64,000 nucleotides of DNA, taken from the NCBI GenBank assembly GCA_965637545.1, contig OZ281495.1, positions 13,826,001 through 13,890,000 on the forward strand. The letters are read 5' to 3'. A program made the translations under genes and the position numbers. The notes under the pieces were generated by a model that saw nothing but the letters and a program-made list of their open reading frames with translations, was not told the DNA's origin and ran no database searches. Shown here piece by piece: positions 1-42,999 of this stretch. Each line of letters opens with the position of its first letter. The stretch's first letter is position 1. The DNA is from Phallusia mammillata. Lineage: Eukaryota.

Positions 1-3000
1 CAGGATGTTTCTGCCCTGAGGGAATGTTCCAAGACGGAATGGAATGTGTTCCGAAATCCGAGTGTCTATGCGTGTATAACGGAACAAGGTAAAACCGACA
101 AAACACATGTCAGTCTATAACTCTAACTGCTCTACATTTACGTGGTAGTTTTTTAATCTTGTAAATGATGTTAAAATCCTGAATGTATTTTGAACACTGA
201 AGACGGAAACTTGAACTAGTCATTGAAATCATTACGTTTTAAAACGAGGCAAAAAAACGTCTTGTAATATGCAACCGATATGTATGTGTGCTCAGCGGTT
301 TGCAGCGTTGTGCGTTGGGTATTTAACATTTGCTTACATATTTAGTAGCAGTATGTTGCACTTTTTAGATACCCCAGTGGTGGTGTTTGGACTATAGAGT
401 CCACATGCAAGTCTTGTAGTTGCGAAGAAGGTTCTGTGGAGTGCACCTCCAACTGCAAACTGACTTGTCTCTCCAATCAAGCTCTTGTTCAACCGAAAGA
501 CGGCTGCTGCTATTGCAGACAAGGTAAAGAAATTTTCATCATGGTAATGGTGGTTAAAAATAACAGATATTTATTCTCTTGGGCTAACGCTGAGTCATGT
601 CCAAAGAAAGTTCAGTGATTCTAAGCATGTTTTGTTGCAGTTGAGACTACAACTGAACCAGTAGAAACAAGCACATCATCTGCCACAACCACCAGCCCAC
701 CATTCATGACCTCCACCACCTCATCAGAAACCAGTAGCACTGGTGTAACTGAAACCAGCACTGAAACACCATGCATCGGTTGTGTAGCCTCGGGAAGGTA
801 TGGAAAAATATTACTGCACCAATTAAGACGTCGCTTGTTCGTTTAGAAATGTTGTAAACCGTTACCATAAAACAGGTGCAACAACAACTTACTACTCTTT
901 GTACCTACAAGAAGGATTTTAAATTTAACTATGTTTAGGGTTCAAACTTTTGTTCAACAATATAGCCATCTTAAATATTTTGTTTACATGGTCTTTTATA
1001 TGTGTATTTTGAATAGCTGTCAAGCAGTCGGTGCTTCATGGCAGACCAACCCATGTGAGACTTGCTCATGCACCAGCGAGCTGGGAAGCGTAGAATGCTT
1101 TGTGCAGATGTGCGCTGTGGAAGAGTGTGAGGATGGTTTCCATCTTATTAGCGTGGAAGGAAAATGCTGCCCTGTTTGTGGTAGGTTTTACTCTTGTTTA
1201 ATATTTGAACTACCACATTTGTCAAACCAATGTTGAACTTCATACTGTCTTCAATAACGAACATTAGGGCTTGCATATTTTGTTTAATATTCATTCTACA
1301 AAGAGGTTTGATACAAGATTTACATCTCTAACTCAAAACAGACTACTATTTTTATTCTTGAACACAATTATTACTTGGTCATTTGGCCAAGGGTTCAGTG
1401 ATGTATAAAATCTCAAACAATTGCCCAACTGGTGGTTTTAAAACAAAATCTTTGTATATTTAGATAAGACTTGCCCTGGCGAGTTCCAGTGCAACGAAAC
1501 GTCATGTATTCCACTGCGATGGGCTTGTGACGGAACAATTGATTGCATCAACGGACGCGACGAGTATGATTGTCCTGAAACTACGACTACCGCCGTCCCA
1601 ACCGTTTCCACCACCACCAGTGCCATGGTAACCACTACGACCACCAGCTCCAGTGGTGTGACCATAACAACAACCCTACCTCCAGTATCAACTCCAGCAC
1701 CAGGTGAAAACAATTGTATTTATTTCGTAGAATTTCTATGTCGATTTGGCCATGATAGATGATCTGGTTTGCCATATAATTCCAATAGTGCTAGACATTT
1801 GTTTAGAATAGATTCCACTTGCACCAGTTAATCCAGGTACTGCATTGCATTGACATGTTTGTCGGGGTTGACAGTAGAAAACACATTTTATGGTACTTCG
1901 ATATGGTTGCTTCAGATGGTGACATTTAGTAGTTAACTTTAGATTCTATTTAAATAAAGAAACTGATGTCATTTTTTTTATTTGTAGTTTGTGCACCACC
2001 CTCCCAGGAGGCAAACTGTTCCAGCTGTCGAACCAGAGTTTGTGCAAGTTTCGGTGAAATGTGTTACGCCAATGAGGTTATTGAAGGCACAAATACCTGC
2101 TGCGAGTGTGATGAGAACACTCTGTTCAATGGCATAAAATGTGTGGAACCTTCTGAATGCTCGTGCTTGGATAGCGACGGTACGTCAGTTTCCAACAGCT
2201 ATTACAGTTATGTGTTTAATGGTTCTTGTCCATAATTGACTGTTTTCTTTTTTTAAATGGTCTTTATTAGGTGGAGTAAGACTCCCAAATCAGAAATGGA
2301 GTGTTGGACAATGTGCTGAATGTATTTGCTTTAACAACAAGGCACGATGTGCAATCAGGGTGGATTGTACGGTGAGAATACTTTTGAACAGTTCGTACGC
2401 GTTTTTGAAACGAATACAAATCGACAAATTTTTATTTACAGGAAACCACAACATCACCCATTCAAACAACAACTATCGGAGGACCAGTTTCCACAACAAG
2501 TACAGCTGGACCAGAAACAACAACAACTGTTGGTGGACCAGTTTCCACAACAAGTGCAGCTGGACCTGAAACCACAACAACTGTTGGTGGACCAGTTTCA
2601 ACAACAAGTGCGGCTGGACCAGAAACCACAACCACTGTTGGTGGACCAGTTTCTACAACAAGTGCAGCTGGACCAGAAACCACAACAACTGTTGGTGGAC
2701 CAGTTTCCACAAGTGCAGCTGGACCTGAAACCACAACAACTGTTGGTGGACCAGTTTCCACAACAAGTGCAGCTGGACCTGAAACCACAACAACTGTTGG
2801 TGGACCAGTTTCCACAACAAGTGCTGGTGGACCTGAAACCACAACAACTGTTGGTGGACCAGTTTCCACAACAAGTGCTGGTGGACCTGAAACCACAACC
2901 ACTGTTGGTGGACCAGTTTCCACAACAAGTGCAGGTGGACCTGAAACCACAACCACTGTTGGTGGACCAGTTTCCACAACAAGTGCAGCTGGACCTGAAG

Positions 3001-6000
3001 CCACAACAACTATTGGAGGACCAATTTCCACAACAAGTGAAGCCGGACCAGAAACTACGACTACGATCGGTGGGCCAATTTCAACTACAAGTGGTCCTAA
3101 GGCAGTTTCCACAACAAGTGCGGCTGGACCAGAAACCACAACCACTGTTGGTGGACCAGTTTCCACAACAAGTGCAGCTGGACCAGAAACCACAACCACT
3201 GTTGGTGGACCAGTTTCCACAACAAGTGCGGCTGGACCTGAAACCACAACAACTGTTGGTGGACCAGTTTCCACAACAAGTGCAGCTGGACCTGACACCA
3301 CAACAACTGTCGGTGGACCAGTTTCCACAACAAGTGCAGCTGGACCTGAAACCACAACCACTGTTGGTGGACCAGTTTCCACAACAAGTGCAGCTGGACC
3401 TGAAACCACAACAACTGTTGGTGGACCAGTTTCCACAACAAGTGCAGCTGGACCAGAAACAACAACAACTGTTGGTGGACCAGTTTCCACAACAAGTGCA
3501 GCTGGACCAGAAACCACAACAACTGTTGGTGGACCAGTTTCCACAACAAGTGCAGCTGGACCTGAAACCACAACAACTGTTGGCGGACCAGTGACTGGTA
3601 AGAAATTGACGCTTGGCATGTATTAAATTAGAGATCACTTGCTTTGACCCCATTGTTTGTACAGAAACTACTGTGTCGTCCATAGTAACGGGCAGTCCAA
3701 GTCCTACATCAACTTCTGGAATTATGACTAGCACCTCAGGTGTAGAAACAACTACCGAACGTAAGTTTCTATATTCATTTTGCGATAGTCTCAAGTCGCT
3801 CAAATTGTCGTTTACCTAACTCATATTGCCTTTTCACAGTTGTCTGCAATGAGCCCTTCCTACCAACCGCATGTGGATGTATGAAAACATGCGAAAATCC
3901 GAACAGTTGTGAGAACGAGTGTCAAATGACATGTGTGTGTCCAGAGGGTCAAGTGATGAACAATGGGACTTGTATTGCCCCAGAAGCATGTCCGTGTTAC
4001 AGAAGCGAAGATGAAAAGATATACAAGGTGATTACGATTTGCCGACAGGAGTTAAGAACATAATTTGCTTGGCATACTTATCTTCCAACATAATAAATGA
4101 CTTTGCACATCGATAAATGGTTATACCTGGTTTCAAAATAGATTGACATATTTCGACGTATGTGTTGTGATTAAATTTATTCTCAAAAAAACTTGGCGCA
4201 TGGCCTTCGGACTAATTTTCGGAACGAAGAATGGTCTAAGCAAGACTTGTATAACGTCTTGTAATTACTTGTTGCAACAGTTTGGTGACATAGTGGAGCA
4301 AGATCAATGTACGAGTTGCATGTGCACAGCAGAAGGATTCGAATGCACAAAATCGTGTAACGTGAAATGTACGTCCAGTCAGCAGCTCGTTGACATACCT
4401 GGACAATGTTGCTACTGCGCTGAACTCCAATGTGAACACAATGGGACTTTTTACGAGGTAAGTAATTAAACTTGGGAAACATACGTACCTACATGGATTT
4501 CATTCTTAATCATCATGCCTTACTAGCACATTTTCTGCGAAGTATTACCTCTGCAACGCTTAATAAGGCCCAAAAGATAGGCGTAAAGTCACAACTTAAT
4601 GATCCGAAATCACCTTTCTTTCAATTAGCCGCAATTGCCTGCCTGCCTGTCTGTTTAATCTATCATCCACGATTTGACTTACCATACATTGGTCGGTATT
4701 TTTTAAGATGGATCAAATCTGGAACAGTGGTGAATGCTCAATGTGCAAGTGTGATGCTAATGGTGTGGCGAGTTGTGGAGAGCATTGCAGCCTTACATGT
4801 GATGAAGGTTTCGAATTAGTGAACCATGACGCTGATGATGACGTATGCTGCAGTTGCAGACCGACTACCAAAGAAGTTTGCGAACAGCCAATCGGCGTTT
4901 TCCGAAAGGTTTGTATATTTTACTTCGGTTTACCACTTGGTTTAATATCCATTTTAAACATCCTAAGCGATTATTATAAAACTAATTAGTGACTGAATCT
5001 GATGCATAACGCGTATGGTCAAAATGTGGTTCTGTTTAACCCTGCAATGGTTGATGTTCGTGTTACTGTAGCTGTACAATTAATGGTTGAAGAAAGTTTA
5101 TCAAACTTTTTACAAATCTGGACACAGACGCGAACATATAAAACAAACATATTCTGTAAATTGGTTGCCGGTTTTATCTTAGGTCGGTGAATCTTGGAAC
5201 GAGGGGCTTTGCTCAAGCTGTACATGCACAAGCGCTGGCAACGTTGCTTGTCTGGTTGTTGCCTGTGCCGCTTGTCCGGCGGGAACAGTCGCATATAGTG
5301 TTGAGGGAAAATGCTGCCCTGAGTGCCTTACCACCGAAACCACAACAACCACACCTTTATCGGCAACAACAACCAGTTCAGGAATGGTTTCCACCACATC
5401 TGGTGTAATAGGCACCACTTCTACTGGACCAGTTACACAGACGACCAGTGGCGAAGGTAACTTTTGTGTGCAAAATATTCGTTTTAACCTAATGATTACT
5501 CATATATTAGTGTGACGAAACCAACCGGGACCACACAAACTTGCTGACTTTTATTGGTATATTTTTAGTTGTGACCACCACGCCAGTTTCATCCACCACC
5601 ATGGTACCATGCGGTAGTGATATGGTCAAATGCGACGGGGAGAGGTGCATTCCCATCGCCTGGACGTAAGTAGACATGTTAATGCGTCAAATTAACGAAC
5701 ATGTGTATGACTAATCATACTAAAATATACATACCTTCACAATGTATACCCATTACTACAGTTGCGACGGAAAACATGACTGCCAGGACGGAAGTGACGA
5801 ATACGATTGTCCTGAGACTACAACCATTATTCCATCGACTCCACCGACTGGGTGTCTTTACGATGGAAAGCTCTATGAACCAGGTAAAAAGAAACTAATA
5901 AACATTCGACATAAATCAATCTTTTACCGATTTTTGGACGATTAGGATAACATGTTGTTAGGTTTAGTTTTTGTGTAAAGGGCGACTTGGCAATCCCAAT

Positions 6001-9000
6001 AAAATGTGAAGTTTAATTGTAAAATGTATATTTGCTCAGGTACTAAGATCGATGAAGGACAATCTGATAACCATTGCTGGGAGGTTTACTGCGACGAAAA
6101 TGGTCAGACACTGTTTGGTGACGACTTCAATTGCGGAACTACAACTCCTGTCTACACCACGGTACCTATCCCACATTTCTTCCAACAAAAATAAATTAAA
6201 CGTTGCAGATGCTTGTGAGTTTAATGTTTATTTTCTAACAGACAACTGAACCCCCAACCACTACTATTCCTCCGCCAGTCTGTGCATTTGAGTGCAGCAA
6301 GGACGAGTGCTTGCCGGATGAGAGCATGGTGTGTGATGGAAAAGTGCAGTGCAGTAATGGTCGGGACGAATCTGGTTGTGTTCCAGGTAGGCACTTACGA
6401 CCATTTTTTAACTTCTGTATTGTTTGGATTATAACACTTGACACCAAAAAATGGTCAAAATTTTCCCGCAGTTTCGGAATGGTGGTTTTGTTTCAATGGG
6501 GCTTCTTGCTTTTCGCCCTTTAAGTTTATTTACCACAGAAACAATGTAATCACATTGTATATTGTATTCAATTGCACCATCAGATTTTCCCAGTAAGAGT
6601 GAATGCTAATGGCGTTTATTTTTCAGTGTGTGGATGCCTGTGCGAATCTGACTGCGACGGACAACCCTTGGCATCGTGCGATGACGTCACCAAGTGCTCC
6701 GAAGACCGCTCTTGTGTTTGTCCACCTGGAACTTACTGGCATACAGGCTTACTGGTCTGCATCAAGGCAACTGCCGATTACTGCCCTTGTGAGATGGATG
6801 GAAAGAAGATGGGCAACTGTAAGATGTTGTTTGTTTGTTTCAATAGTTTTTATCGTGAAAATCTTGGAAAAATCTACCAACATAAGAGCTGTCTAAACGT
6901 TTGCTATACCGACAAGTGACGCAAAGAGCACTGGCAAAAAATTAGAGAAAATGCTGATCGTTGGGTTTGGATAAGGTTACTGATAAATTTGACATAAAAA
7001 TTGACTCAGAAAATTTGTTCCTAACCTTTCCTGTCTAACCGCTAACTATATAATAACTGTGCTCTTTACACCCTCGTTTGTTTTTTAGCGAACTTTGTTT
7101 AATGTAAGTCATATGACCCCATCCTGAATCCATTGTGATTTTACTTTAACCCAGCATTGCTGACGAAGTTTTTCACCAAAACCCCGGTATTGCAATTATT
7201 TTGTTTTGTGTAGCATGGAACATCAAACCATCATGGATGACACAAACCATGTACATGCCCGGTGAGGTTTGGACCAATCAGATGGACGAAAAACTTCCAG
7301 AATCGACCAACGAGGAAGGAGAAGTCTCAAGTATTGACGGTAGTCTGGCTGTGGACGAAAACAGCAACACTTTCTGGGACGTCAACCCGGCAGGTCAGTT
7401 GGTTTACCGAACAATTTCCAGACCTAAAAGTTATAGGTAGCAGTAGTGTTTAATGTAGGAGATGTCCCCGGAAATAAACCCGTAATTTTTAGTCCAGTTA
7501 GCTGCACAAAGTATGGGTTTATCTATTTCCATTGTCCAATATAGTTACAATTGTCGAATTATTTTGTTAGGTGACGTTTTCAACCGGGACATGGAGTTTG
7601 ACCTTGGCTATCTGTATCACGTCATTCGTCTACGTGTCGACTGTCGATTGGCAGACACAATGGACCATGTCGAAAACGGTCTTCAGCTCTTGGTATGAGA
7701 CTTGATCCATTAGCTTAGCTGTAGCATAAACATTGAAATCCTAAGAGTAAGCCCCTTGCAGCACAACATCGTATTGTAACAACCTACTCATACCAGCCCT
7801 TGTTCATTTTAGGCTTTGGAGAAGCAGCCTTACGGTGCATTTAAATGGGTTGAAGTGGCTGTGCTCGGATGCAAAGCCAGTGCAGACTTCGTGCCGGAAA
7901 TTAGCGAACCATTCCAGAGCACAGCTCGAGTCTTCCGCCTTCACATCGACGGAACACAAATACCGAAAGACGACTCACCTGTCGTGAAACGAAAACCCCA
8001 GATCAGCGAAATATCTTTCCTTATTGACGGTAAGCAACACTTTTTTTATTTTTGCTTTCCTAGCAAACTTTTAATAAAGCAACTGCATGTATTTTTTCCC
8101 ATTCACATTGAAATTGTCACACGAAATAAATTTATCTCCAAAATTTTATAAATTTTAATTGGTTACAAACTTCTCTTAATAGCATGTCCGAGTTTTTGGA
8201 GAATATTTTATACAAATCGCATTTTTTTCAGAGCCAACTGTTTGGCCCGAGGGCGACTGTCTTTCCTGCAACTGCAGTTCAGATGGTTCGAACCAGGTCT
8301 GCACGGTGACATGTAACCTTACCCCGGAAATCTGTGCACAAGAAGATAAGATGCTCAAACAGGGAACTTCAGGTATATTTAACATAGAAGTAACACTTCT
8401 GCAGAGGTTTTTGCTTGATCGAAATGGTGTTTTTTTACATGTAAGAAAACTTTCCCAGTTGTTACATACTTTGATTAGTTCGGCATTGTATTATTTACGC
8501 CACTAAACAACTTAGATATTTCTTTAAAAATGTTTTAGAATCAATTTTAAACAATAAAAAAACGTAGTTGACTGCTGCCCAATCTTATCAGTGTACTGGA
8601 GTAATGTCTTAAGGCAATAACAATACATAAGTACATGGAATCACACAGTTGCTTGAAACTGGCAATTAAGTTTCAGTGTATAGAAATGTCTTTTGTGTCC
8701 AGACCAATGCTGTGCTTGCGTGAAAGTCTCGGAAACAACTACAACTCCTGTTGCCACTACAACTACTACAGAAGGTACGTCTACTACAACCAACATAGTG
8801 TTGTACCTCAAATACTACACTTGCAAGTCTTGAATATATATGTAAATAAAATAAATTGTACAAGAATATGCAGCAAAAGTTGTACAGTCAAAGTAATGAT
8901 CAAAGTGTAATGCGATTTGCATAAATTTATTTGGTTTCAATTTACAAGGTGTTGCTCAAACGTCTACCTCGTCTGAATCTGTAACCACCACAATTGGTAA

Positions 9001-12000
9001 CACCGAGTCTACTACGTCGACCGCGGCGTTCACAACCACCACCAGCGGCAGTGTTGAGACCACAACGACGACACCCACAGTTTGTCCTGACTCTTGTCTC
9101 TGTTTGTCGGACTGTGATGGTTCAACCGATGGTTGTTCTGCAATGCCCGAATGCACAATGTCGTAAGTTGCTTCAGATTTTTTTTATTATTGGTCCATAA
9201 GATAATCGCATAGGATTGCAACCAATATGGTTACTTGCAACTAAATTGTGTTGTCTTGCAGATGCGTTTGCCCAAACAGTGCACAGAATTCATACGACCG
9301 TGCCAACTGGAGATGTATTCTGTCGCCGCCCGCTATTTTGTGTCCAGGTGTTACTACCACTACACTGAAGTCCATTGACACCACTACTTCCACACCAGCC
9401 GCCACGACCACCACTCTATCAGAAACAACTACCACCCAGGCACCGATTTCCTCCACTGCCACACGTATGTTTATAGGATCTCGGCCCCTTTGCCTACAAA
9501 TTAAATTTTTTGACCTGTTTGAAATGTGTATAAATACAAGGCCTGCTAGGAAACGAGGTCGCATGGCTTTACATTCGACAAGACATGATGGTTTGGTGGT
9601 AAAAATATTGGCCTCGGCTGTTTGTGGCTTTAAACAACAATGTTGCCGACAAACAGACTGGTCAAGCATTTTATGTCATTTTAAAATGTTTTATTTTTAC
9701 TTCCAGCCTGTGACCAAACCTGTGTCCACAACCTGACTTGTGAGGAAATGCGCGAGTTCAACCCACTTGAGGTACCAGCATTTGCCGCAGAAGCTAATCC
9801 ATTTGTGTGTTCGGAATGTCCGTGTCCATCTGGATCCACCAGAGGTAAACGGAAAATCAGCATGGTTCACTTTCATTGTAGCTAATGTGACATTCAAATT
9901 AACGAACCATTATTTTAGACGAAGCATGGGAAACAGGAATGTGCTTGCATTATCCCGAATTGTGTGAGGGCTGCGTATACCAAGGTGTAACCTACCCAGT
10001 GGACACCAAGTTTGCACAGGGCACTTGTGAAGAGTGTCAATGCGTGATGGTTGAAGGGGAACCAGTCACTCAGTGTTATGAGAACTGCAACCTAAGATCG
10101 TACGACTGCTCAAACGTAAGTTGATTGTGAAAGAAAACGCGTTTGTTTTGACCAGTGTTGTTACGTCTGTGTTTTGATTGCAGTGCAGTTAGTTAATAGA
10201 TTTAGATTTTCCCAACATTTCATTTGTTTCGTTTATTACATTTTAAACTTTTCATCACGCACGGAATATTTGTTTCCTATAAAATTAATGTCGTGTAAAT
10301 ATATCTCTCCTGCTTGCAGAAGGGGATGAGACTGGTTGAGGGCGATGGGGTTTGTTGCCACTGTGAAGCAATTCCTACAACCACAACCATTCCGCAAACG
10401 ACCACCACTGTAGGATCAACCACACCATCTGGTCCACTATGTCCCGAACACTGCATGCGCAATGTAACTTGCGAACAGCAGGTCCGTGTAGTTTTGTACC
10501 TCGAACAATCCATGGCGCTGTAAAAGTACAAGTAGTTTCATTCTTCATTTTTAGAACGAGTACTCTGCGGATGACTCGACGCCGCCATTCGAATTGGATG
10601 AATCGTGCGGTGAATGCGCTTGCCCTGTTGGAAGTGTAGAAGACTCGACCTTCTGGAACACCAGCTTGTGTTTGGTGTTTGAAACACCATGCGATAAACC
10701 ATGCCGTGTTGGTGATATGGTTTACGGGGTAAGTGTTTTGGCGTGGTTTAAACGATATTGGAGAAAACCATTGAAAGCTCTACCATTAAGATGTCTTTTC
10801 AAACTAGCATTATTAGAAAATATGACACTACTATTTCAGTGAATTTATTTTCATCCAGGTGAATGAAACTTACACTCGGGGAGATTGTGAGGCTTGTGTT
10901 TGCTACTACGAGGATGGTCTATTTAAAGAGACATGTGTACCATACTGCGCCATCACCGAACAGGAATGTGCCGCGGAAAACAAAATTCTTCTGAATACAG
11001 ACGATGTTTGCTGCAAGTACGTAGTTTCATAACACGATGTGTTTTAGGTTACTGTAAAGTAACAAAGCTTTTATTTTGTTTAGGTGCATAACAGAGACTA
11101 TAATAACAACAACAACCACCTCATCATCATCTGGTTCTGTTACCACATCTACAGCAATGAGTGAACCAACCACGACACAATCTGGTGCGCTTACAACCAC
11201 GACTGGAATGGCTGGAGAGACAACCACAACACCATCTACGGGGGTTACAACCACAACAGGAAAGGGCGGAGAAACAACCACACTATCTGTGGGAGTTACA
11301 ACCACCACCGAAATGGGCGGAGAAAAAACCACGACTGGAATGGGCGGAGAAACAACCACACTATCAGTAGGAGTTACAACGACAACAGGAATGGCTGGTG
11401 AGACAACCACAACACCATCTATGGGGGTTACAACTACAACGGAAAATGCCGGTGAAGCAACCACTACTGGAATGACTGGAGAAACAACCACCACCGGAAT
11501 GGCTGGTGAGACAACCACAACACCATCAATGGGAGTTACAACCACAATAGGAATGGGCGGAGAAACAACCACAACACCAGCTGCAGGAGTAACAACCACT
11601 ACAGTAATGGGTGAGGAAACAACCACATCAGCTGGTACAATGAGTACGACCAATGTGGTCCAAACCACAACTACCATTGTTGAGTGTCCTGACGAATGCC
11701 TATGTGAACTTGGATGCAATGGAGAACAAGATGCCTGTTCTTCAATGGAGGGTTGTAATGCTTTCTGTCAGTGCTCTGACAGGTGAGTGAATATTTCAAA
11801 GGCACAATTAAATACTTTAAGTATTTTTAGTATTTTTAAAAAATAACATCCTAACGCTCTCCGGCGGTTACTTGTTGGGATTGTTTCTGTAATACTGTAT
11901 GACACTTTTCTTTGCAGTTCGGCTATACATGTCAACGGAAGATGCGCCGTGGCACCTCCAAGTGAGAAATGTGCGGTTGTTACAACAACCACCGGACCAC

Positions 12001-16518: not shown

Positions 16519-17468
16519 GAGGTCAAGACCGACCGATGACCCCTTGATTGACCAGCGGACTCGATTTTACGACCTTGAATACTGCCCGCGCTGTAGCAGC
16601 CTTTGATTAACTTATATTGTAGAATCAGTGTTCTTATATGCCATAGATTTACATTTAATGCTTATAACAAAACATTACACAGAAAACAGGCACTCGCTTG
16701 TTTTTACTCTAAATCATATCTAGCCGCTACAGCGTGTCAATTTGTTCTACTTTTTGTAGTTTCCGGTAGCCTTCAATATTTATCCTTATTATCTATTATC
16801 CCCTTATTCACCAATGTTCGCGTTGAGTAGCAAAAGACATACATAATTTGCACGTTGTTGTTGTTCCACTGTATAACGTACTGATTTGCTTGCACGACTC
16901 GTGTTTCACTTCGCAATTAGTTCCCAAAGTAGCAGAAGAGTTTAAACGTGCATTACCCGCTGTACTTTCGCAAATGGTGACGAACCCCTTTCCGAATATT
17001 GACCATGATTCATTCCACTGTACATAGCACTTTTTATTATCGTAGCTCTTGCATTCATAAAAACCATCCATAGCGCTAAACGGGGCGGTGCCCATTAAAA
17101 AGAAGGCGTGGTTGGTTCCAAAGACGTTCCATGTTGCAGTATATAGTATTCGTCCCTTTGTATATATTCCCCTGATATATATCCAGGTCTAAAGCTGTCC
17201 CAATGCATTTGTGAACTTTTTCATAACACCTCTAATCTATCAAGTGCAATATTCGGTTGATAATGTGTTTTTTGTTGATGTGTTGGCTAACGGACCGCCA
17301 CTTGTGTTGCGAGGTTTACCATCTCGAAGCGAGCGTGTAATATAAGTTTAGCGCTATGTGTACATGCGGGTTGGTTTTGTTTGTATTTCTAGACAGGAAT
17401 ATTTTGATTAATGCTGCACGGATGTCAGATAGCGGTATGGTAAGGGGCAAATACAAAGCACAAAAAAG

Positions 17469-17801
17469 CAGAGTTGTAAGTCGGGCCGGTTCGAGTTCGG
17501 GCTTAGGTTTCTTCAAAACACGGGCCTGATTCTGGCCGGACTTTACACTCGGTGTCAGTATTTTTTTGAATAAATATATTTAGCTAAGTAGCCAGTTGCT
17601 GGACCGGACCTAATAACAAAAAGCCCTAAAACGCCTTGTTAATGACCAATTGTCTATTGTGTTTGTTGTTTTGATCTTTCCTGAGGATTTAATATACAGA
17701 CAAATATATATAACTTATATCAATCAAACTTTCAGGCCTAAACAGGCTTTTGAAAAACGATTCGGGTTCTGGCAACAGTGTTAGGCCCGTTTAGAACTCT
17801 G
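17469..17801. mobile_element. Decayed hAT-like MITE
   Basis: Imperfect TIRs cagagttgtaagtcgggcc and (reverse complement) cagagttctaaacgggcc, with CGGGCC/CGGGCT subterminal motifs. No intact TSD. Confidence 0.5.
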
Positions 17802-30000: not shown

Positions 30001-33000
30001 CACCGTTTATTTAATTAAATAACTAAGAATGGAAAGTATTTATTTAGTAATAAGTAATTGCTTCTAAAATAAGATAAGAACTGGCTTGCTGTTTCTTAAA
30101 ATGCGGCCCTTTATTAAAGGTTGTGTGGCCCGCAGAGACGCTTGGATTTCAAATGTACTGGCAAATGAGTCCATGCAACTATTACATATTTTTGAGCAGA
30201 TTAATGCGCCCGATGCTATTTTTCTGCGACCTGGCAATTTGTGGCTAGAATCAAATACGAATTTACTTGTAGTTAAGCATATTTGGAAAGCAACAAAGAA
30301 AAATCACCTTGTTTGATACACAGGTGCGGTCCGCGATCTAATTTTGGCATTTGTATTTGCCCCCACAGTAACAAAGGTTGCACACCCCTGCATTAGGCTA
30401 CAACAAAGTTTTAATTCAAAGTGGCTGTTTTTCTTCAAACAATTAAAAAGTCATATAACAGAAAGGTAGGAAAGTAATATATAAAGAGTACAGGCCCAGT
30501 GTCACTGGTTTTCTATGCAAACTTACATCCTTCGTTGGTTCGACGCGTGCACTGAGCAAAAGGTCCAGGTCCAATCGCAGTACTAGCTGAGACCCCAATA
30601 TCATATTCAGTATATGGTAGAAGTGACGTAATCAAACTTTCTTGTGTTAAAGGATCAATAGGTAACGTTTCAGCTGTTTGTTGACTATCGGGTATCTGGT
30701 ACTTGATGGTGTAACCAGTTAGAACCCCGTTTGGTTGCTCTGGTGTGTTCCATTCAACTTTGATAGAGAATTCGTTGATTACGGTGCAAACGAGACCCAT
30801 TGGCATTGTCGGCACTGAAAACAGAGTTTCAGTTTACAAATATGATGAATGTAGGTCGGCATTTCGCTAACGGTTTTAAGACAAAGGTGTAACAAGAAGA
30901 CAAAGGTGTAACAAGACTATATCTGTTAATTCCTTGATGATCTTCATATTCCATTCATAATTTCTAGTGTTTGGGTATTTTTTGTGTGTTTTTGTTATAA
31001 TTATAGCCGGATTCTAAAACAAAATCGACAAATACTGGATCGTTCTGGTAAGAAATTTATTCTACTTTCATCTCCGCATGTACTGGAATTAAATCGTTGA
31101 TACAGAAAATAAACAGAAACCGATTGACAAAAAGACCTATCCAATAAAGTAAAAATGCAGACACAAACATCAAAAACGTTTTCATTGACAATTATTATTG
31201 GCATCGATAATAATCATTGTTTGAAAAAAATTCACAATAAATTTAAAAAAATATTACATCACTTGCAGAAAAACCTGGGCGATTTACAAAACACAACTTT
31301 AAAGCAAAAAATACTGAACCATCTTACCAGCTTCATCTGTTGTGAATTGAACTTGGTTAGACAGCGGTCCTGTGCCAGCAACAGTAGATGCTCGTATACT
31401 TATGGTGTACAGGGTGAAAGGTCGAAGGTCAATTAACTCAGCTCGCGGTTCCTCTACAAAAACGCTGCTGACCCCAGTGTCATGTTTGCTTGAGTACTGC
31501 ACCTCGTAACCAGTTATGACACCATTCGGCACCAAAGGTTGGTCCCAAGATACATTAGCACTTCTAGATGATTGTTGCATCTGTATATTGCACAATTAGC
31601 TAAGGTTTTTAAGCATGTGTAACAAACCGCTGGTTTAAGGGGTTTTCTTACCATGATATTGAGTGGAGGATCGTCTGGTACATCTTGCGCTGTTTGAAAC
31701 TGAAAGCTGGTGTTAGGACCTGGTCCAACACTGGTAAAGCTGGTCACAGTGGCGCTGTAGTTTTTAAATTTTGAAAGACCTTCCACAACCATTTCAGTCT
31801 GATTTCCTGTAGCAAAAACATTTGCTTAAACTAAGTTGTTGTTTTTGTCTACAAAGAGAGAGTTTCGTTTTCATCAATCATTGGTGAGAAATTCAATCTG
31901 TAGGGCGTCTTTACACTTGCCAAATATTCTATTATTCACAGTAAGATTCTTTTCGCTATAAGCACTCCTGTATTTCCCTACATAACTTACCTATAGACGT
32001 AAGTTGGTCAAGGCCTTCTATATCAATTGTGTATCGCACTATAATTCCATTAGGTTGTAACGGTGGATCCCAGACGAGAGTGACCGATGTCGATGTGAGT
32101 TCGCTGTAGCGAAGATTGTCTACAGGCGTTGCTGGCAAGTCTTGCAGGGTGGTGGTCGACACAAAAGATGGTGGTCCATAACCATCAACACCAGAGACAA
32201 AGGGTAAGACTTGGACGGTGTAGGTGGTGTACGGCTGTCAAAGAAAATAAAACTAAATTGAAATACTGGAATAAAAAACGTTTGTGCCATTAACCCGCTT
32301 TTTTTAGTTTGTACATAGACGATTATCTAAACACGCGTATGTATCGTCGGTACCAACATAATTTGTATTTTTTAAGATCAGAAGAAAAAAGCAGTCTCCA
32401 AAAACTTCAACGTTACCAGCAGTCCTGATATTACGGCCTCTTCGAGTGCAACGCTTTGTTTGGTGTCCACCATTTCTGACACACCATCGGTTGCTAGGGA
32501 CGTTGAGACGTGATATAAAGTTGGGCCTGTTAGTGGATGCTGTGGAGACCAATTCACCATTATAGACGTGGAGTTATGTGGTCGAGCAGTAAGGTTTACC
32601 ACAGGATGGTCGGGAACTGAAACCAAATATTGAAACCATTTATGCAAGAAAACACCAAATTAGACAAACCATTAACTTAAACAAAACTAAAAAAAACAGT
32701 ACAGCACATATTAATCTCACCGCAGAGCAGTTTTTAAGTGTAAAGCGTTAGTACTTTACTTAGTAGCTGAAAACAGACATATAGGCTACCTACCATTGCT
32801 ACGTAATACATAGTCGTTAATAAACCAACGAACATGCGTCATGCAAGAAAACAAAAGCGAAAGAATGGTTGTTAGTTTCATGACAACGTCACTTACCCCC
32901 AGCAATAGTCGAACCTTGAACCACGTCGGACCAAGGACCAGATCCCTTAGATGTGAAAGCAGAAATTTTCACTGAAAAGGCAAAAAATTTTGGCAACCCA

Positions 33001-36000
33001 GACACTGTGGCTCGGATTGAACTATTTGAGATTTTGAACTCTGTTGATTCGACGTTTGCGTATTCCAGACCCGAATTTTGACAAGAAACGTTGTAGCCCA
33101 GGATCACTCCGTTGGGACTAGCAGGTTCAAGCCACGATATTGTAAGCTGGGTTGACTTTGTGTCAGCAATCGTCACGTCCCTTGGTGAACTTGGCACTGG
33201 AAACAAATACACTTGATTTAAATGATTGAATTCTCGAAAATTCGTTCGGATTTTTTTTACTTGCTAATTTGGTGTTACACAGAGTGTCAAACCAAAATGT
33301 GATAGCTCAACATAATAAATTAACTATGTCGTGTCATTAAATAAAAACGTAATTGTTAAACCTATACACAGTTTGGGCCAAATTTGCTTACTTTTATCAT
33401 ACTAATGAAAATTTCTCTAAACGCAAACTTAACCCACCTGATTCTAACGTGCGGACACTGCACTCCGCAGGGACACCAACACCGGCCGAAGTGGTACCCG
33501 ATACCATCACAGTGTATGTGGTGTATGGTTGTAGTTCTTGCAACTGTTGCTGGTTAGTGTGTACATTTTGGACCACCACACTCTCGTCGGATCCTGATGT
33601 ATTAACAACAAATCCAAGCGAAACTCCGTTCCATTTTAATGGGTCTGACCAAATGACCAAAACGCTCTGTTCATCCACAGCTTTGCAAGAAAGGTTCGCG
33701 GGCTCGCTGGGTGCTGTGAAATAAATAAAACGCAAGCGCGCCATAGAGAAGATTGCAGTAAATCTGCTCCTGACGAACAACTAAAGCACAGCTACAATGT
33801 CCATGTTAGACAGCGAATTGAAGGCAAAGTGATAATGAAAAAGGTTTGCTAGGACAGAGTTAGTGTAACTACATAGCAGGATGTCTCTTTGGGTTACAAT
33901 ACCAATGCATAGGCATAAGTTGAACTTACCATCTTCCATAGTGCGGACGCGCACAATACTGCTATTCTGTCCCCCGTCTCCCAGCGCTGTACTCGCAGTC
34001 ACCATGATGTCATATTGGGTATACTTGCGAAGATTTTCTAGCACCGTTTCTTCGGCGTGGAAGACCTAACACATTGTTGTAAATTTACTAATAAGATAGC
34101 GCTTTTCTATACTATACAATGTCCAGGTATTATGTAAATACTATTTATACTGGAAATGCAAAATCTAAGTTATCTACTTTAGTCTATAATACATCTAATA
34201 CGCAATAGACGCAACAAAACGCAATTTTTTGGTAGGTTATATATTTAGATCACGGTTTTCTCGAAAAAAATAAAATTTGTAAATGGCGTATAATAGTTTG
34301 TATCAAGCTTGGTCATTGCATTATTTGCACATTTTATTAGCCTAGATTCCGTAAATTGCATGGTTTATATAATACATTGGTAGATCATAACTAAAAACTT
34401 TTGAAAACGTACATCTGTAGTTTTAGTATCGCCTCCCAGTTGAGTATAATATGCAGTGTAGAACTGAATGCGTCCGTTCGGCGTCAAGGGCGGTTGCCAG
34501 GCGACCCTCACTGATGTCGACGTCAGTGGCTCCACAGAGACCCCACGTGGCGGGTCTTCAGGGTCTAACAAGGAACGGTAGAAAAATGTTTGAAAAGTCG
34601 TTCAGAAAGCACAATAACCACAACAAAAATAAAACAAAACAAAGTATGAAACAGATGCCTACCGTCTTCCAGTGTTTCGAAGGTTTCCATTTGGCTGGAT
34701 TGGCTTCCATTCCCAACTCTTGTGTAGGGAACCACAGTAACTTTGTAGACAGCAGACTTTCTCAGGTTGGTGAGGGTAACTCTTGAAGAACGTGACGTCA
34801 CCAAGCGCATGACCTTATCTTGCACGCCCCTACAATGCACAAATACCTCAACATGCAAACCTATAAAAACTGTCGACATAAAAGCAAGCAACTTTGAAAC
34901 AAAACAGTGACACAAACAGTTACATCTGGGTTTTTTACCCTCAGCGGCAACGGCCATGTTTAGGCGTTTTGTAAAGTTTGGTGGGCATAAAGCATGTAAC
35001 TATTTAAAAAAGACACATTTTCGTACACCAGGCCTACTGAATACGTTATAGGCTACCACAGTGGTTCCCAAACTTTTTTCTTTTAAGGCGCATTTTAGAA
35101 AAAAACAAAAATTATTTGGCGCACTTCGAACATTTGAATAAAAAATATATTTGAATTTTTTTATTTCAGTTTAAAATGGCACAGCAAATTAGCTGACAAA
35201 GGCACTAACTATGAGGTCATAAAGCCGCTATACAGGTCACTCTCATAGTTAAATAGCCTAGTTGAACATCTCAGAGACATGGAGCATGTTGGCCTAGTGG
35301 TCTAAGCACCTGGTGCTACTACTCTACTTGATTGATTTTAATTTCAATATTTTTTGCGGCACACCTAATGACATCTCGCGGCACAGTTTGGGAACCACTG
35401 GGCTACCAAATCAAGCCGGTTTTGTCATTTAGGAATGCTTGGTGCAGCGCAATAACTAGGACTGGTGCACTATTATTAATGTATGAGTGTGCTTAATCGC
35501 TGGTCTGCAAGAACACTTCAAAGCTGATTCCGGTGATCAACATGCGTTTATCTCATACGGATATGCGAAATTTTGCCGCAGGAAAAAATTATAAAAGTTC
35601 GGCCATGCAAACTTCAAATACATAAATACAACAAGTTACTGGTAGCGAATGTCGTAATTGATGACGATTCCGTTCGGTTTCAGGGGTGGTTTCCATTCTA
35701 GTGTTATTGCAGTTGAATTAATTTGGTGGTAAATCACATCGTAAGGTGGGGATGAAGGCTCTATAAAAAAATTATAATTCAATCTAATGATAATCCTTGT
35801 ATGTTTAAAAACCAATAGGCCTCAAAATACATTTTAAGAAATTAACAGAATGGGGTATTCGGACCAAAAAGACTGCATTTGAGATTCATGTATTTGTGGT
35901 GCAATATATGTTTATATACCATCTTCATCAGTGTGCACTTGGATATAGTTCGCTGGTCCCTCTCCCACTATTGTAGCAGCTGTCAGAGTAAAGTTGTACG

Positions 36001-39000
36001 CAGTGTATTTTTCGAGGTCCACAACAATCTCGGAAGTGACATTACCGTTCAGATGCAAAGTCATCACAGTGGTTGGATCATCTGCGCCACAACACTAATT
36101 TAAATTCTTGGTTGCACATGCTAAGGGGGAAAATGCACATGCCAAAGGGAGTACAACATTTGACTACATAGATAATCGCCATATAATTTTTGATCGAATA
36201 TCCTTCAATCCTGCCGGTTTGACTTAATATCAAGATATGTTGCAAAATGTAATTGTACAAGCATTTTGACGAGATTTGTTTTGATTCTTACGTCGAAAGA
36301 TATATTTGTTTCAAATTTTGTTTATCACGTCATGATGTTCAGTGGCTTTTGGAGGAAAATTAAACCTTAAACGTTCCTCACAAAAAAGTGGTAGCACTTT
36401 GGAATTGACACCACGGCTTTTTTGTACTAATATATTTGCAAATGACGCGTGTATAGAAGAAACAAAAAAACGTTTTTAGTCACTGACCCAATGTGTGATA
36501 ACGGAGCATGTAGTAAGTTACTATGCCGTTCGGAATAACGGGTGGTTGCCATTGGATACGAATCGAAGATGAAGTCACATTTTCGTACGAAAAATCAACG
36601 GGGGGTGTTTCCGGGACTATAAAAGCAAAACCAAACCAGGTTTAAAGTTTAATGCGAGAACAACATCCAACACAAACTTACAAAACTTTCACTTTACAAA
36701 TTACAAATTAGTGTATTTTAAAATTAGTAACTTTAGAGAAAATTAGTGTATTTTAAACTTTGCACATTGGTTTAACCATACTCTAACCACTTACCATCTT
36801 GCAAAGTATAAATGGTTAGTAAGTCCGACTCTTTGTCGCCATCTCCGTATTTGGTGTTAGCTCGAACCGATGCACGGTAAGTGTTGTATGGTAGCAATGA
36901 ATCAAGAAGTTTTTCCGGGTTATCATCCTTGGTCACGAAGCTACAATAAATATTTTGCGCACGTCAGTTTTGTAGCAAAGAAAAGTAACCCAAATTCGTT
37001 TTAGATTAACTTTGTTGGCTATTAACGAACGAATGGAAAATGATAAAACGTTATGAAAAGTTTACAATGACAAATAAATACAAACAGTTTATGTAAAATT
37101 CATTTTAAAATGTCATCGCAAAGCGGTATGGCAGACAATGACTTGATTTCGACCAACAATAACAAGATAATTATTCTTATCTTTTTTAAATTACTTACTC
37201 TGTATAACATGAAGATGCATAACCGAAAAGAACAAACCTAGAATTTTCTTCATTTCTTCCATACAACGGTGAAAGCTTCAAGTTATAAAACTGTATAATC
37301 CCGTTTGGAACATCTGGCGGCATCCACGTCATCAACACGCTTCGTGATGTCACATTGACGTAGGAAAGGTTGTAAGGGGGTGTGGCGGGTTGTCCCTCCA
37401 TCGTACGCACGGGTAACGGCTTACTGCGCATTATGCTCTCCCCTTTACTGGTGTTGGACGAAACTCTTATGTTGTATTGACCATATGTTTGTAGTTGCTG
37501 TAGATAACACTCTGTCCGGTTGCTGTAAAAATAATGTTACAAAAGTCATAAACAAAACTCGAATGCTGGATATCTTGAAACCGTACCTTTATGAGATATA
37601 GTTTGTGTTGAAATTGGCATCGGATATTTAACAAGAAAATATCCGTGTGGTTAAAGTGCGCGAAACTTATAAGATTTTTATGTCTTAGATTAAGATAAAA
37701 TAGTTTGAATGGATCAAAACTGTAAGTGTTTGCTTTTTGGTGTTCGGCAATAGCAGTCTCATAAATCCATTTGGCAACAAAAAATTTGTCATCTAATTCT
37801 TTATTCTTGCAATGTAGGTTACAACTTTTACCATTTTACCATTTAGAAACGATACGCCTGTGCCAAGGAACTCTTCACTTTTAGCTTTCTTTTATTCTAA
37901 TCACATTTCATTATTAGCCCAACGTCACTTTAAAATTATACGCCAATTCGCAAAGTGATTTACCTAACTGCGGTGTAAGTCCTTGTTGAATTCGTGTAGT
38001 AAACTGTGTAGGATCGTATTATGCCGTTGGGCACTTTCGGTGGGAGCCACGAAAGGTGGATGGCAGCAGACGATGAAATATTTCTGTAAGTTACATTGGT
38101 GGGAGCATCATCTGGTACATCTTCATCTGTATGAATTGAAAATTGAGGGCTGGAGGGTCCCTCCCCAACTGTAGTATGAGCGCTGACGTAAACCTATGAC
38201 GTAATAGATCGGTGGATTTCAGTCATGGAAACTTACTTAAACAAAATAGAAAAGCAACTACTTTTAAATCTACAAACCACCAAAAAATTAACAAGCATAA
38301 ACTTTTATTTCAGAACTATTTTTTATCTTTATTTTTAATTTGTTTAGAAACATCAAAAGAACGAACTTTTTTTTTAAAAAGGGAAATAAAAAAAAGTTTA
38401 AAAATATCGTACACTATATGGTCTGTATTTCTTCAGGTTTTCAACCACTGCGTACTCTTCCGTAACGTGATGGTTCCTTCTGCCGGATACTTCTGTGATC
38501 AGGACCGAATACCCAGTTACTATACCATTTGGTATCACTGGAGGGCGCCATGTAATATTGACTGCAGTGGAAGTAAGGTTCACATAGGACAAATCAACAG
38601 GCGGCGATTCGGGTCTATCCTGTGCCGTTTGGAACGTTACATGGGCCGTTGGGCCAGGCCCAGCATCAGTTACAGCTTGTACTGTAGCCGTATAGTTGTT
38701 GTAAGGTCGCAAGTGTTGATCGAAGTGGATTATAGGGTCTAGGTAGCGATTGATGATCAGTTTGCCGAGAAGAGTTATGTTAAGCATTGGAGATGTGTTT
38801 ATCAATCTTTCCTCGTATAACCTGGCATCGTCTTCAGTCTTGAAATGTACAGAAAAAGCGTCAACGTTCGTTGCTTTGCTGTTTTTGACTGAAGTTTTTA
38901 AACCCTGGAATGTTTTAGCGACACAAAATCCTGTATAGAACATTTTATACGCCTATGTGCTTTTGTACAACCATTTAAAGCAAGGGGGGGTTTGTGCCAT

Positions 39001-42000
39001 ATTTTAAGCAATAATCGCCAATTTAGTAGAAAATAACTATGCTTAAATTCCAGGTTGTTCTCCGGCTTTTATAAAAAATAATCCATTTGATGCTTAAAAA
39101 CACAAAAAATATTCAAAAACAGAACCGAAAAATACGTTCTGTTTATCAAATCGCTTCCAAAAAATGCCCAAAGAGTCAAACAAAAAAAATCAAACCGCAT
39201 TGATAACTTACCGGGGCATCGATAATAGTTTCAATAATTTCTCCATTGGTGGTGTTTAACAATGTGAAGATATATCGTCGCACAATGCCATGCGGAACAG
39301 AGGGAGGGACCCAGGTAAACGTCATTGACCGGGGGCCGTCAGGTGCCAAAGAAAGATGTTCAACTTCCTCTGGTTCTGCAATGCAAGGATCAAAATTGCC
39401 AATTTTTTGATTGTGCAAACTTTAAGTCAGTGCATGGTTCTCAACATGGAAGGAAATTACTTTTTTACATGTGGTTTATAAATAGACATATAGGCTCCGG
39501 AAACATGACTTGTGAAGTTGAAAAAATACCCAAATTTAAATCATCTTTGTAATTTTAAATCAGATGGTAAACCATCTATTATGCAGCATGTAGGGAGGAA
39601 TGAAAATGTTTCGAAATGTAAAGGCAAGAATTGGTAGAAAAAGGTTGGGAAACATTGCATTAAGTAATACTTGTAGATGCAAAATGTAGGACTAGCCGAA
39701 TAAACGTAAGTTGCGAAAATGCGTAATTTAATTCTTAAAAAAGTGGTTTCTTAAACGGGGTTAGTAGGTTCAGAGGGATGTTTCCATAGGTTTCTGAAAA
39801 GTTCTCCCAATTCTGCACTGCAAATGCCAACGCTTCATCTAACGACTTCAAGAAAAATTTATTTCTTATCTATTAAAATTGAATCAATTAGACTGTTGTA
39901 TTAAACTGGTGCAAGACATTTTTTAAACACTATTTTGCGTCTCACTAACATACCCCCTTGTGCTGTTGCAAAATAATGGAAATCCGATCTAGGTCCGTCT
40001 CCTTCCACGGTGCTTGCGTAGACAGATATTCCATACATTGTAAAGGGTTGCAAGTCATTAATGCTTAAATTCGTTTCGTTGGTTGTAAATGACTCGTTTC
40101 CATCTGCTTACAGTCACATTTCAATAGGTTAAGTTTCATGTACCACTTAAAGGAGGTTTCAATTACTGTGCTGTCAACCGGTTCAAAACAAAATACTGTA
40201 CTAAGGAGTTCTTATTTCTAAATAAAAACTAGTCTGCGATAGGATTGAGAGCAACAGCAGAGATCTATTTGTGGTTAGGTTGTGTATTCTGCTATAAAGC
40301 TTCAAACGCGAATGTTTTCTTGAATAAATGTACATGTTATATTGCCAATGCCTACCTTGGAAGCTAAGCGTCACAGTGTACGTTGGAACGCCATTTGGTT
40401 TATCAGGTGGCATCCAAGAAATAGTAAGAGCTCTGGAAAGCCTAGAAATTATATGGATATTGGTGGGAGGACCCTCCGGTGGCTCCTGTCTGGTGGTAAC
40501 ACTGACAGATGTAGGTTCGCCCTCTCCAACAGCCGTCCATACGCGGACAGTGATGTTATACTCGGTATAAGGTTCAAGATTTTCGATTTTGTACTGAACC
40601 GGGCAAAGAAGTTCGAATGTGCCCTGAATGGTGTAACGTAGTTGGTAAGTACTATATCGTTTGTAGTACAGTATCAAGTTAAAACTATTGTTAGTAGCTG
40701 CTACAAGTTGGCCAAAATGTTCGTTTAACAAAAACAGCAAACTTGCGGATGCTCTCGTCGTTAATAGTAAAAATTACTTTAAAGTCGGATGTTATTAACA
40801 GGCATATGTAACTTATAAGAAGAAAAGTACTGTGTCATTTAAAAACACTATATTTAAACAACTTGCCAGAGATGATTGTTCAAGCACAGAACGACGAAGT
40901 CGATGATCACCGATGTCTACAAATTCATACAAAAGTTAATGTATAACATGTAACTTACTGTACAACAAATCCTAGCATACTTACTTCTACCCTCGCCATC
41001 CGTCGGAGCCTCGCCCTCGACGTCATCCTCACTGACGTCAACAGTCTCCTGAGGAACAATCTCGCCACCGGATTCGGGAGACGTCACTGTGACGTTAACC
41101 GCAGCGGTGGACAAATGTTGAACTTCGGAAAGCTGCTGAAGCTCTTTCGATACGTCACTTTGTGATGCGTCACTTCCACTACCAGATGACGGTGACGTGA
41201 CCACTGCGTCACCGCTGTCGTGACGTGATGGCTGAATGGCGTTGCTTGTGCTTGCATGCATGAACAGCAGAGAGCTGATCGCTTGTGGTGATGCGTTGTC
41301 CAGTATACACTTGAAGGGGTTAACGTTCTGACAACAGTGCATAAAAACAGCATAAACAATAAACTTGTTTTTGAAAAAAAAAAGATTTTTGAATTACCTG
41401 TTTCGGGTAGAAGTTGATTTCGGAAACTACGTCATAGTCTGGGTCAGTAGCGGTGAGCTGATATCTGGTGATTTCCCCGTTAGGAGATCTTGGATATTCC
41501 CACGATACAGAGGTAGTTGATGAGCTGAGTGCAGTTGCTTCCAGATTGTTTACGGGTCCTAGAAATCACATGAAAAGTTGTTATAATTGAATTAATAAAA
41601 AAGGGAATTATGACAACTATGAATGACTTAAAATTTGAGCACAGATAAATGCCAAAAATGGTTTCAAATCAATGATGTAAGATGACGACACAATGACGTG
41701 AAGGTGAATGATGATGTCATAATGAGATGATGACACTTTCCAACCTGAAAGTGACTCTTGAACTTTGACGCGTTCGAGATCGGTAAACGGCCCCTGGCCT
41801 GCAGAGTTTACTGCCGCAATCTTAACATAGTAGGTTGCACCGTGTTCCACGTCACTGATCACGTGATTGGTCAGCGGAGCGCTTACGTTGACTTCGCTGA
41901 ATTGCTCGCTCGGGTGGGGAAAGAACTGGGGCAGTTAAGGTATTTTTTAAACTTGCCATTTGTTTTCCAATAGTAAGATTTTATTAAGACACTATACCAA

Positions 42001-42209
42001 TGCTTTGAGTGTTTGTCGTAGGCTGCTGGGCCTAATACATTATTCTATGGGCATTGCTTGTTGTTCGCGCCAAGACGATAAAAAAGGTTTAAAAAACTAG
42101 TGTTGCGCATTGCGTTGCGTTTGAAACTAGTAAGCAAAGAAAAGATGCTTACCTGTCTAAACTGTAAGATGTAAAACAAGATTTTTCCATTTGGATGTTG
42201 CGGTTTATC
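18060..42209 (-). CDS. PTPRQ: R3-subtype receptor protein tyrosine phosphatase, PTPRQ-like; 5' end lost in the gap
   Basis: At least 19 FN3 repeats (e.g. VPSSPRDVTIADTKSTQLTISW...PNGVILGY), an R3 membrane-proximal domain (CNGPLKTDTEYR|VKYRAETTNGAITDTPYSE), a TM helix (LIIGVAAAVGAFIIILVTSVVIL, ~21405-21477) and one PTP domain (KNRHAKLVPFDHSRVKL...DYINASFI...DFWRLIW...VVMCTSGSGRCG...MVQT). Last exon 18060-18088 ends EETVF*. Orthology to PTPRQ is inferred from architecture, not from a tree. Confidence 0.85.
25830..26060 (+). mobile_element. Possible highly decayed tRNA-derived SINE
   Basis: GC-richer island in an intron with weak A-box-like (tgtagtaatatgagc) and B-box-like (gggctcaaatttc) motifs at tRNA spacing. 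No second copy seen. Confidence 0.25.
26729..28398 (+). CDS. Nested Ly6/uPAR (three-finger) family protein with signal peptide and probable GPI signal, 238 aa
   Basis: Exons 26729-26795, 27155-27396 and 27991-28398 splice in frame. N-terminal MANKCCIALLSIINVGVA; Cys pattern CFACSGLEC...C.YGDVCW...FRGC...CKSCCVTDYCN (terminal CCxxxxCN hallmark); hydrophobic C-terminus CFIAVIWWITLVITF. It lies in the 4177-bp PTP intron 24826-29002 on the opposite strand. Confidence 0.85.
35059..35400. mobile_element. hAT (Charlie-like) MITE, 342 bp
   Basis: Perfect 16-bp TIR cagtggttcccaaact / agtttgggaaccactg and perfect 8-bp TSD ggctacca (35051-35058, 35401-35408). Confidence 0.95.
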
Positions 42210-42409: not shown

Positions 42410-42420
42410 TAAGATAAATG

Positions 42421-42926: not shown

Positions 42927-42999
42927 TGTTTACATCAAGGCCTTTGTGATTTTAAACCAGTTAATACTAGTACTTAAAATGATGAAATAACAAATGCAC

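Follow-up and report, generated by a model that had tools for sequence, protein, structure and literature searches.

We analysed a 64,000-nucleotide stretch of the genome of the ascidian Phallusia mammillata (assembly GCA_965637545.1, contig OZ281495.1, forward-strand positions 13,826,001 to 13,890,000; hereafter the window, in whose own coordinates positions are given) and identified in it a tail-to-tail pair of genes. The + strand carries a giant mucin-type gene, represented here by its 3' part, and the - strand a gene for a receptor protein tyrosine phosphatase (PTP) that resembles PTPRQ. A first-pass annotation had read this pair as a possible retained microsynteny with the neighbouring vertebrate genes OTOGL and PTPRQ. 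The PTPRQ half of that proposal holds up, on the evidence of the loop code of the fibronectin type III (FN3) domains, the C-terminal tail and the mutated WPD loop. The OTOGL half is unsupported: over the stretch of the mucin gene that falls inside the window we detected neither a VWD nor an AbfB signature, and no similarity to the 3' exons of the presumed eel OTOGL. We therefore think it probable that these are two separate, convergent ascidian genes that are neighbours by happenstance, and that no OTOGL-PTPRQ module has been retained. The adjacency itself is best read as a local order of genes that some of the ascidians have kept, and we infer that the ascidian and vertebrate adjacencies lack common ancestry.

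The receptor gene runs on the - strand. An array of at least 16 recognisable FN3 repeats (22639-41934; fn3 matches in Pfam, and tblastn) is collinear in tblastn with residues 1144-3168 of the PTPRQ-like protein of Clavelina lepadiformis, and is broken by the single very long intron of the gene (about 24820-29010), which interrupts an FN3 domain. A membrane-proximal exon (21403-21633), found as an open reading frame (ORF) collinear with Clavelina residues 3213-3312, contains the transmembrane helix LIIGVAAAVGAFIIILVTSVVIL. It is followed by a single PTP domain (18418-20475; Y_phosphatase match) spread over seven exons (20475-20301, 19922-19846, 19721-19587, 19340-19221, 19099-18951, 18714-18579 and 18505-18418), and by no second one before the stop codon (TAA, 18062-18060). 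The last exon (17841-18088) holds the final nine codons (...GDGLEETVF), the stop codon and a 3' untranslated region extending to about 17841, as read from its translation and from spliced contigs of four runs. All receptor introns are GT-AG, and every junction of the PTP domain is present in spliced RNA-like contigs from four public runs belonging to three studies; thus, the receptor gene is expressed, and its transcripts are spliced in agreement with the model.

Upstream, the gene is cut within an FN3 domain by an assembly gap of 200 N (42210-42409). The limit of 42209 given in the first-pass annotation is therefore correct as the edge of the assembled sequence and is not the end of the gene. 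No counterpart of the approximately 1,100 N-terminal codons of the Clavelina orthologue (a C-type lectin and FN3 domains) was detected in 42410-64000; sequence may be missing at the gap, or the assembly may be misjoined there. The Clavelina and Styela proteins differ from the gap-cut gene in having an N-terminal part, with signal peptide, C-type lectin and about ten FN3 domains, that is not in the window. A partial Ciona protein model begins at the same point as the truncated receptor gene.

The FN3-only ectodomain, one transmembrane helix and one cytoplasmic PTP domain constitute the layout of an R3 receptor phosphatase. A profile of ascidian PTP domains searched against the PDB ranked all R3 chains (Ptp10D, PTPRB, VE-PTP, PTPRJ, PTPRQ, PTPRO and PTPRH) above other single-domain PTPs; human PTPRQ was not the top-ranked chain. 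Judged from its sequence, the receptor is a member of the R3 group, and it is very probably the ascidian counterpart of PTPRQ (proto-PTPRQ).

Several observations point to PTPRQ within the R3 group. The nearest relatives of the window proteins are from Clavelina, Ciona and Styela. A search with one FN3 exon against 1.84 billion representative proteins returned 150 matches, in which the ascidian proteins were annotated 'PTPRQ-like' and the vertebrate proteins with a PTP domain, among those named, were all PTPRQ (caecilian, eel, bowfin, shark, chimaera, lamprey and others). The FN3 B-C loops on the - strand comprise 13 of the W7G4Y type, three W7G3Y and no W4G4Y, and the + strand of the same region has none of them. 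According to the R3 evolution study of Chicote et al. (2017, PMC5336234), W7G4Y and W7G3Y are the loop code of PTPRQ, as opposed to that of PTPRB. That study groups two proteins with PTPRQ under the name 'protoPTPRQ', namely Ciona_2, which is the Ciona protein of our comparisons and has a WPD loop that reads 'WSV', and the one from C. savignyi, on the grounds of a mutated WPD loop, common FN3 intron positions and no YxN tail. The PTPRQ identity of the Phallusia receptor is thus not new, since it was already known for Ciona. Also, an N-terminal C-type lectin is common to Styela, Clavelina and the long isoforms of vertebrate PTPRQ.

The catalytic domain alone is less decisive for this assignment. 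A maximum-likelihood tree of PTP domains, built without vertebrate PTPRB, PTPRJ, PTPRO and PTPRH sequences, recovers the ascidian proteins as the sister group of vertebrate PTPRQ, at a support of just 78/68. Approximately unbiased (AU) tests rejected neither a union with PTPRV-like proteins (p-AU 0.23) nor one with protostome R3 proteins (p-AU 0.25). The search for relatives with the Ciona PTP protein was biased to two-domain proteins of the LAR type, and yielded PTPRQ and PTPRV-like sequences.

The catalytic motifs of the receptor are altered. The P-loop reads MCTSGSGRCG instead of the consensus HCSAGVGRTG, with the Cys and Arg of the CX5R motif retained; WPD has become WPV, with Val replacing the Asp; and KNRY has become KNRH. 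The altered motifs, located at 18579-19099 (-), are conserved in ascidians, with a P-loop of the form C-[ST]-x-GSGR in which the His that precedes the Cys is replaced by Met or Ile, and with WPD loops that read WPV in the window gene, WSV in Ciona, WPS in Clavelina and WPV in Styela. As similar changes occur in Ciona, Clavelina and Styela and the Phallusia gene is expressed, we consider them an old conserved state and not decay. In all, they are kept in five ascidians (Phallusia mammillata, Ciona intestinalis, C. savignyi, Clavelina lepadiformis and Styela clava). The loss of the WPD aspartate together with the retention of Cys-X5-Arg predicts a poor phosphotyrosine phosphatase, which may act on lipids or serve as a scaffold. 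Vertebrate PTPRQ, an R3 phosphoinositide phosphatase associated with the deafness DFNB84A, has likewise lost the WPD aspartate. It differs in carrying WPE, which is absent here in its exact form, and HCSAGVGRTG, and its PTP domain is 35-39% identical to that of the window gene, compared with 61-63% for the Ciona, Styela clava and Clavelina lepadiformis proteins. The ascidian proteins also have the W7G4Y loops and the same tail, and the Clavelina gene is collinear with the window receptor over about 2,500 residues.

The tail of the receptor (...PTGDGLEETVF, translated from 18060-18088, -) has no Tyr and no YxN motif. The form PTGDG-x-EET-x-F closes each of the four ascidian proteins whose C-terminus is complete, including those of Ciona, Clavelina and Styela. 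Vertebrate PTPRQ ends in ...EWEETTM in eight sequences, whereas other R3 proteins end in YxN motifs. The EET-x-hydrophobic end looks like a PDZ-ligand-type C-terminus specific to the PTPRQ lineage. The available part of the R3 evolution paper (PMC5336234) makes no mention of it. The loop code, the missing YxN motif, this EET-x-hydrophobic end and the mutated WPD loop bear out the first-pass description of the receptor as PTPRQ-like; the FN3-only stalk and single PTP domain are further likenesses to vertebrate PTPRQ.

On the + strand, about 40 exon-sized ORFs of positions 1-16518 were scanned one by one against Pfam, and a separate scan was made for Thr/Ser/Pro-rich (PTS) blocks and motifs. The mucin gene begins beyond the window edge and only its 3' part (1-16518) is inside. 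Eight ORFs match VWC, the best with an E value of 1.8e-7 (15107-15316), followed by 4.7e-7 (871-1233). Three match Ldl_recept_a: 1442-1759 (E 3.5e-11), where the LDL-receptor class A (LDLRa) module is followed by a Thr-rich linker, 5742-5945 (E 6.5e-6) and 6239-6520 (E 9.2e-4). A TIL match at 3746-4060 (E 4.9e-5) lies slightly below the curated cut-off. These Cys-rich modules are interleaved with PTS blocks, two of which are large ORFs. The first is a Thr-rich tandem-repeat ORF at 2409-3623, with 130 Thr in 405 codons in a frame assumed from Thr content, and the second, the largest, is at 12340-13674, where 183 of 445 codons encode Thr; its repeats are of the TTTTGMxGE type, with the end of a VWC module 5' of them.

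Two VWC exons (14637-15316; E 1.3e-4 and 1.8e-7) directly precede a C-terminal cystine knot (CTCK; 15732-16518) encoded by the last two exons, 15732-16010 and 16321-16515, which match Cys_knot/DAN (E 4.4e-6 for 16321-16515) and are followed by the stop codon TGA at 16516-16518. The solved structures nearest to the last exon in the PDB are the cystine knots of Norrin, Mucin-2 and VWF. With its PTS domains, its VWC modules and the cystine knot at its C-terminus, the gene fits the superfamily of gel-forming mucins and VWF; the three N-terminal VWD-C8-TIL units typical of that superfamily would fall upstream of the window. A gene with TIL, VWC and Thr-rich parts that terminates in a cystine knot at 16518 had been described from the letters alone, and the Pfam matches, the PTS scan and the stop codon agree with that description. 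The discoidin module also described was not found in the window: ORFs at 7150-8151 (+) have no Pfam family match. They end in a '...WVEVAVLGC'-type motif and may represent a very divergent galactose-binding or discoidin-like module.

The relationship of this mucin to otogelin can be judged on its 3' 16.5 kb, the N-terminal VWD region being outside the window. Otogelins carry VWD-C8-TIL units, one of which (D4) sits towards the C-terminus, but over these 16.5 kb there is no VWD or C8 match in Pfam and no GLCG motif. None of the approximately 40 ORFs of 1-16518 (+) matches AbfB, the upstream two thirds of the gene lying outside the window. Lang et al. (2016, PMC4948705) report that an AbfB domain between the VWD units defines otogelin, that it has no apparent orthologue in invertebrates, and that among invertebrates the mucin-like proteins come nearest to SCO-spondin. 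The ascidian mucin resembles OTOG and OTOGL in being a secreted protein of the VWF/mucin superfamily with a cystine-knot end and a PTPRQ neighbour; it differs in its LDLRa modules and very large PTS blocks, which are not otogelin features. It shares LDLRa modules, together with VWC/TIL and CTCK, with the group of invertebrate mucin-like proteins, hemolectin and SCO-spondin (PMC4948705), although its PTS blocks are far larger than those of hemolectin. We found no TSP1 motif (WSxW or CSxTCG) in any + frame of 1-16600, unlike SCO-spondin. The C-terminal half of vertebrate SCO-spondin is rich in TSP1. Of the SCO-spondin-like look that the first-pass annotation had ascribed to the gene, the LDLRa modules (three ORFs) stand, and the discoidin module does not, with TSP1 motifs missing as well. 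On these sequence features the mucin is best read as a lineage-specific, LDLRa- and PTS-bearing mucin-like gene that is not a demonstrable otogelin.

The two genes converge with 1,542 bp between the mucin TGA and the receptor TAA, matching the spacing of 1.5 kb on opposite strands noted at first pass. An assembly artefact, in which the two genes were wrongly joined, is highly improbable. Despite the 200-N gap that truncates the receptor at 42210, the junction itself (16.5-18.1 kb) is gap-free, 99% of the words sampled from 14600-20500 occur in two DNA-type runs, which may be source data of the assembly, and the independent genome of Clavelina has the same arrangement. The spacer between the two 3' ends (16519-17840) contains an unsupported ORF of 126 codons (16811-17188, -), Cys-containing and perhaps part of the mucin 3' untranslated region or of a small transcript without annotation. 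It also contains a short RNA-like contig from a single run (16713-16881). A correspondence of this ORF to a 101-residue gene call at the same position in Clavelina was rejected, as the two are unrelated in comparison.

In Clavelina lepadiformis, the PTPRQ-like gene is followed by this 101-residue gene call, then by a retrotransposon, and a gene on the opposite strand with a product of 9127 residues ends about 8 kb downstream. The VWC, VWC, CTCK and CTCK exons of the window match the end of the 9127-residue gene in that order, with 42-62% identity and E values of 1e-16 to 1e-21: the VWC exons are 55% and 53% identical to 46576-46141 of the Clavelina locus (L002), and the two cystine-knot exons 42% and 62% identical. 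As the last four mucin exons are collinear there, we conclude that the tail-to-tail pair is common to Clavelina and Phallusia. The first-pass annotation had named absence of the adjacency from all related genomes as an outcome that would refute its proposal, and Clavelina shows that this outcome does not apply. The element between the Clavelina genes (39423-43238 of the same locus) has a full-length ORF of the long terminal repeat (LTR) retrotransposon type, with RVT_1, RNase H and integrase domains in 1271 residues, and its presence indicates that the spacer tolerates insertions. In Styela clava, the downstream neighbour of the PTPRQ-like gene is an animal haem peroxidase gene on the same strand, and no match to a mucin exon of the window was found within 10 kb on either side of the PTPRQ-like gene. 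The other flank carries POLE2 in the window and a VPS4-like AAA gene in Clavelina, and no cross-match on that flank was detected between the window and the Clavelina or Styela loci.

That the adjacency was kept between Phallusia and Clavelina even though the other flank changed, with 3' ends only 1.5 kb apart in the window, could alternatively reflect a functional module without shared ancestry with vertebrates, in which the ascidian pair is co-regulated as a matrix protein and its receptor in one cell type. We regard this as very unlikely. The four runs of three studies that assemble the receptor, at a depth of 6-43, contain no contig on the mucin exons at 14600-16518. This is weak evidence against shared expression, as contigs show presence and not absence. 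Also, convergent genes have no common promoter, the Clavelina genes are split by a retrotransposon and 8 kb, and Styela lacks the pair within 10 kb.

The vertebrate adjacency to which the ascidian pair had been compared is real. In an eel, Conger conger, PTPRQ is preceded on its own strand, at a distance of 3.4 kb, by the end of a gene with a product of 2653 residues and a cystine knot in its last exon. The order of genes is CTCK gene (+), PTPRQ (+), MYF6 (+) and MYF5 (+). From its position, size and cystine knot, the upstream gene is presumably OTOGL. In Amia, MYF6 likewise lies downstream of PTPRQ. Shark and lamprey PTPRQ have no neighbouring gene within 10 kb. The vertebrate pair is thus arranged head-to-tail inside a block with the MRF genes, in contrast to the convergent ascidian pair, which confirms the caveat on orientation that the first-pass annotation had attached to its own proposal. 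OTOGL has been called 'the adjacent' gene of human PTPRQ (PMC5993672).

These data bear on the possibility that the linkage is ancient, with the common ancestor of tunicates and vertebrates having had a VWD/cystine-knot gene beside proto-PTPRQ that was the source of both OTOGL and OTOG. The details would be that OTOG arose through genome duplication, that the ascidian copy grew into an LDLRa- and PTS-bearing mucin, and that one of the two genes was inverted. We take human OTOG to lie beside MYOD1, and OTOGL-PTPRQ beside MYF6 and MYF5; if so, the linkage of otogelin with MRF genes is older than the vertebrate genome duplications, which fits such a history. It is further favoured by partners of the right families, by a pair kept in two ascidian lineages, and by the direct upstream position of OTOGL in eel and human (PMC5993672). 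On the other side, the orientation differs, Styela lacks the pair within 10 kb, and no MYF-like sequence was found in the window, the Styela locus (L001) or the Clavelina locus. When the window and the Styela and Clavelina loci were compared by tblastn and tblastx with the 3' exons of the gene upstream of eel PTPRQ, nothing reached E < 0.01, and the domain content of the mucin is unlike that of otogelin. The reported lack of an invertebrate otogelin (PMC4948705) is a further difficulty, as is the R3 evolution paper, which describes tunicate-vertebrate synteny for PTPRB and none for PTPRQ (PMC5336234). Microsynteny retention is low in tunicates. On balance, we consider an ancient linkage, with or without these details, unlikely. 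It is doubtful, to a slightly greater degree, that the mucin is a much-modified pro-orthologue of otogelin and otogelin-like, and a remnant of a pre-vertebrate block of a VWD/cystine-knot gene, PTPRQ and an MRF gene. We find it equally doubtful that such a block yielded the OTOG-MYOD1 and OTOGL-PTPRQ-MYF6/5 regions. Were it so, a matrix protein and a receptor of the hair-cell bundle would both trace to one tunicate locus.

Three points weigh against our preferred reading of a happenstance neighbourhood. First, with 17 multi-VWD genes, the number reported for Ciona (PMC4948705), and two flanks in a genome of roughly 15,000 genes, the nominal chance of a multi-VWD neighbour is about 0.2%, and for this reason the idea of an ancient linkage stays alive. 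Second, the adjacency outlived the split between Phallusia and Clavelina while the genes of the other flank differ. Third, an otogelin ancestry is unrefuted, given that the VWD region of the mucin is beyond the window, and absent contigs do not amount to absent expression.

Under the reading of two separate genes, the mucin-type gene would encode a giant secreted, heavily O-glycosylated and polymer-forming glycoprotein of the VWF/gel-forming-mucin superfamily. From what is known of this family, its cystine knot would form tail-to-tail disulfide dimers, the VWC and TIL modules would act as rigid spacers, the LDLRa modules would bind calcium and the PTS blocks would carry the glycans. The receptor would be a type-I protein with a long FN3 stalk, one transmembrane helix and one R3-type PTP domain, and its conserved ...EET-x-hydrophobic tail would act as a putative PDZ ligand.

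If the pair were ancestral, it would be one of the rare instances in which microsynteny between tunicates and vertebrates involves two deafness genes, and would help to trace how the matrix and receptor components of hair bundles originated in tunicate sensory cells. The solid results are more modest, in that the receptor adds a further ascidian proto-PTPRQ to the kind already described for Ciona. Three small new points are the EET-x-hydrophobic C-terminal tail common to tunicate and vertebrate PTPRQ, the adjacency of the mucin and PTPRQ-like genes common to Phallusia and Clavelina, and the conservation of the altered catalytic motifs in five ascidian species, in a gene that is expressed in Phallusia.

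Beyond the gap, the window encodes the DNA polymerase epsilon subunit 2 (POLE2) at about 54988-57987 (-), with Dpoe2NT and DNA_pol_E_B matches on four exon ORFs. We also identified a tRNA-Ser (AGA) gene at 52209-52282 (+), and the opposite-strand ORFs of that stretch look like tRNA or short interspersed nuclear element (SINE) sequence.

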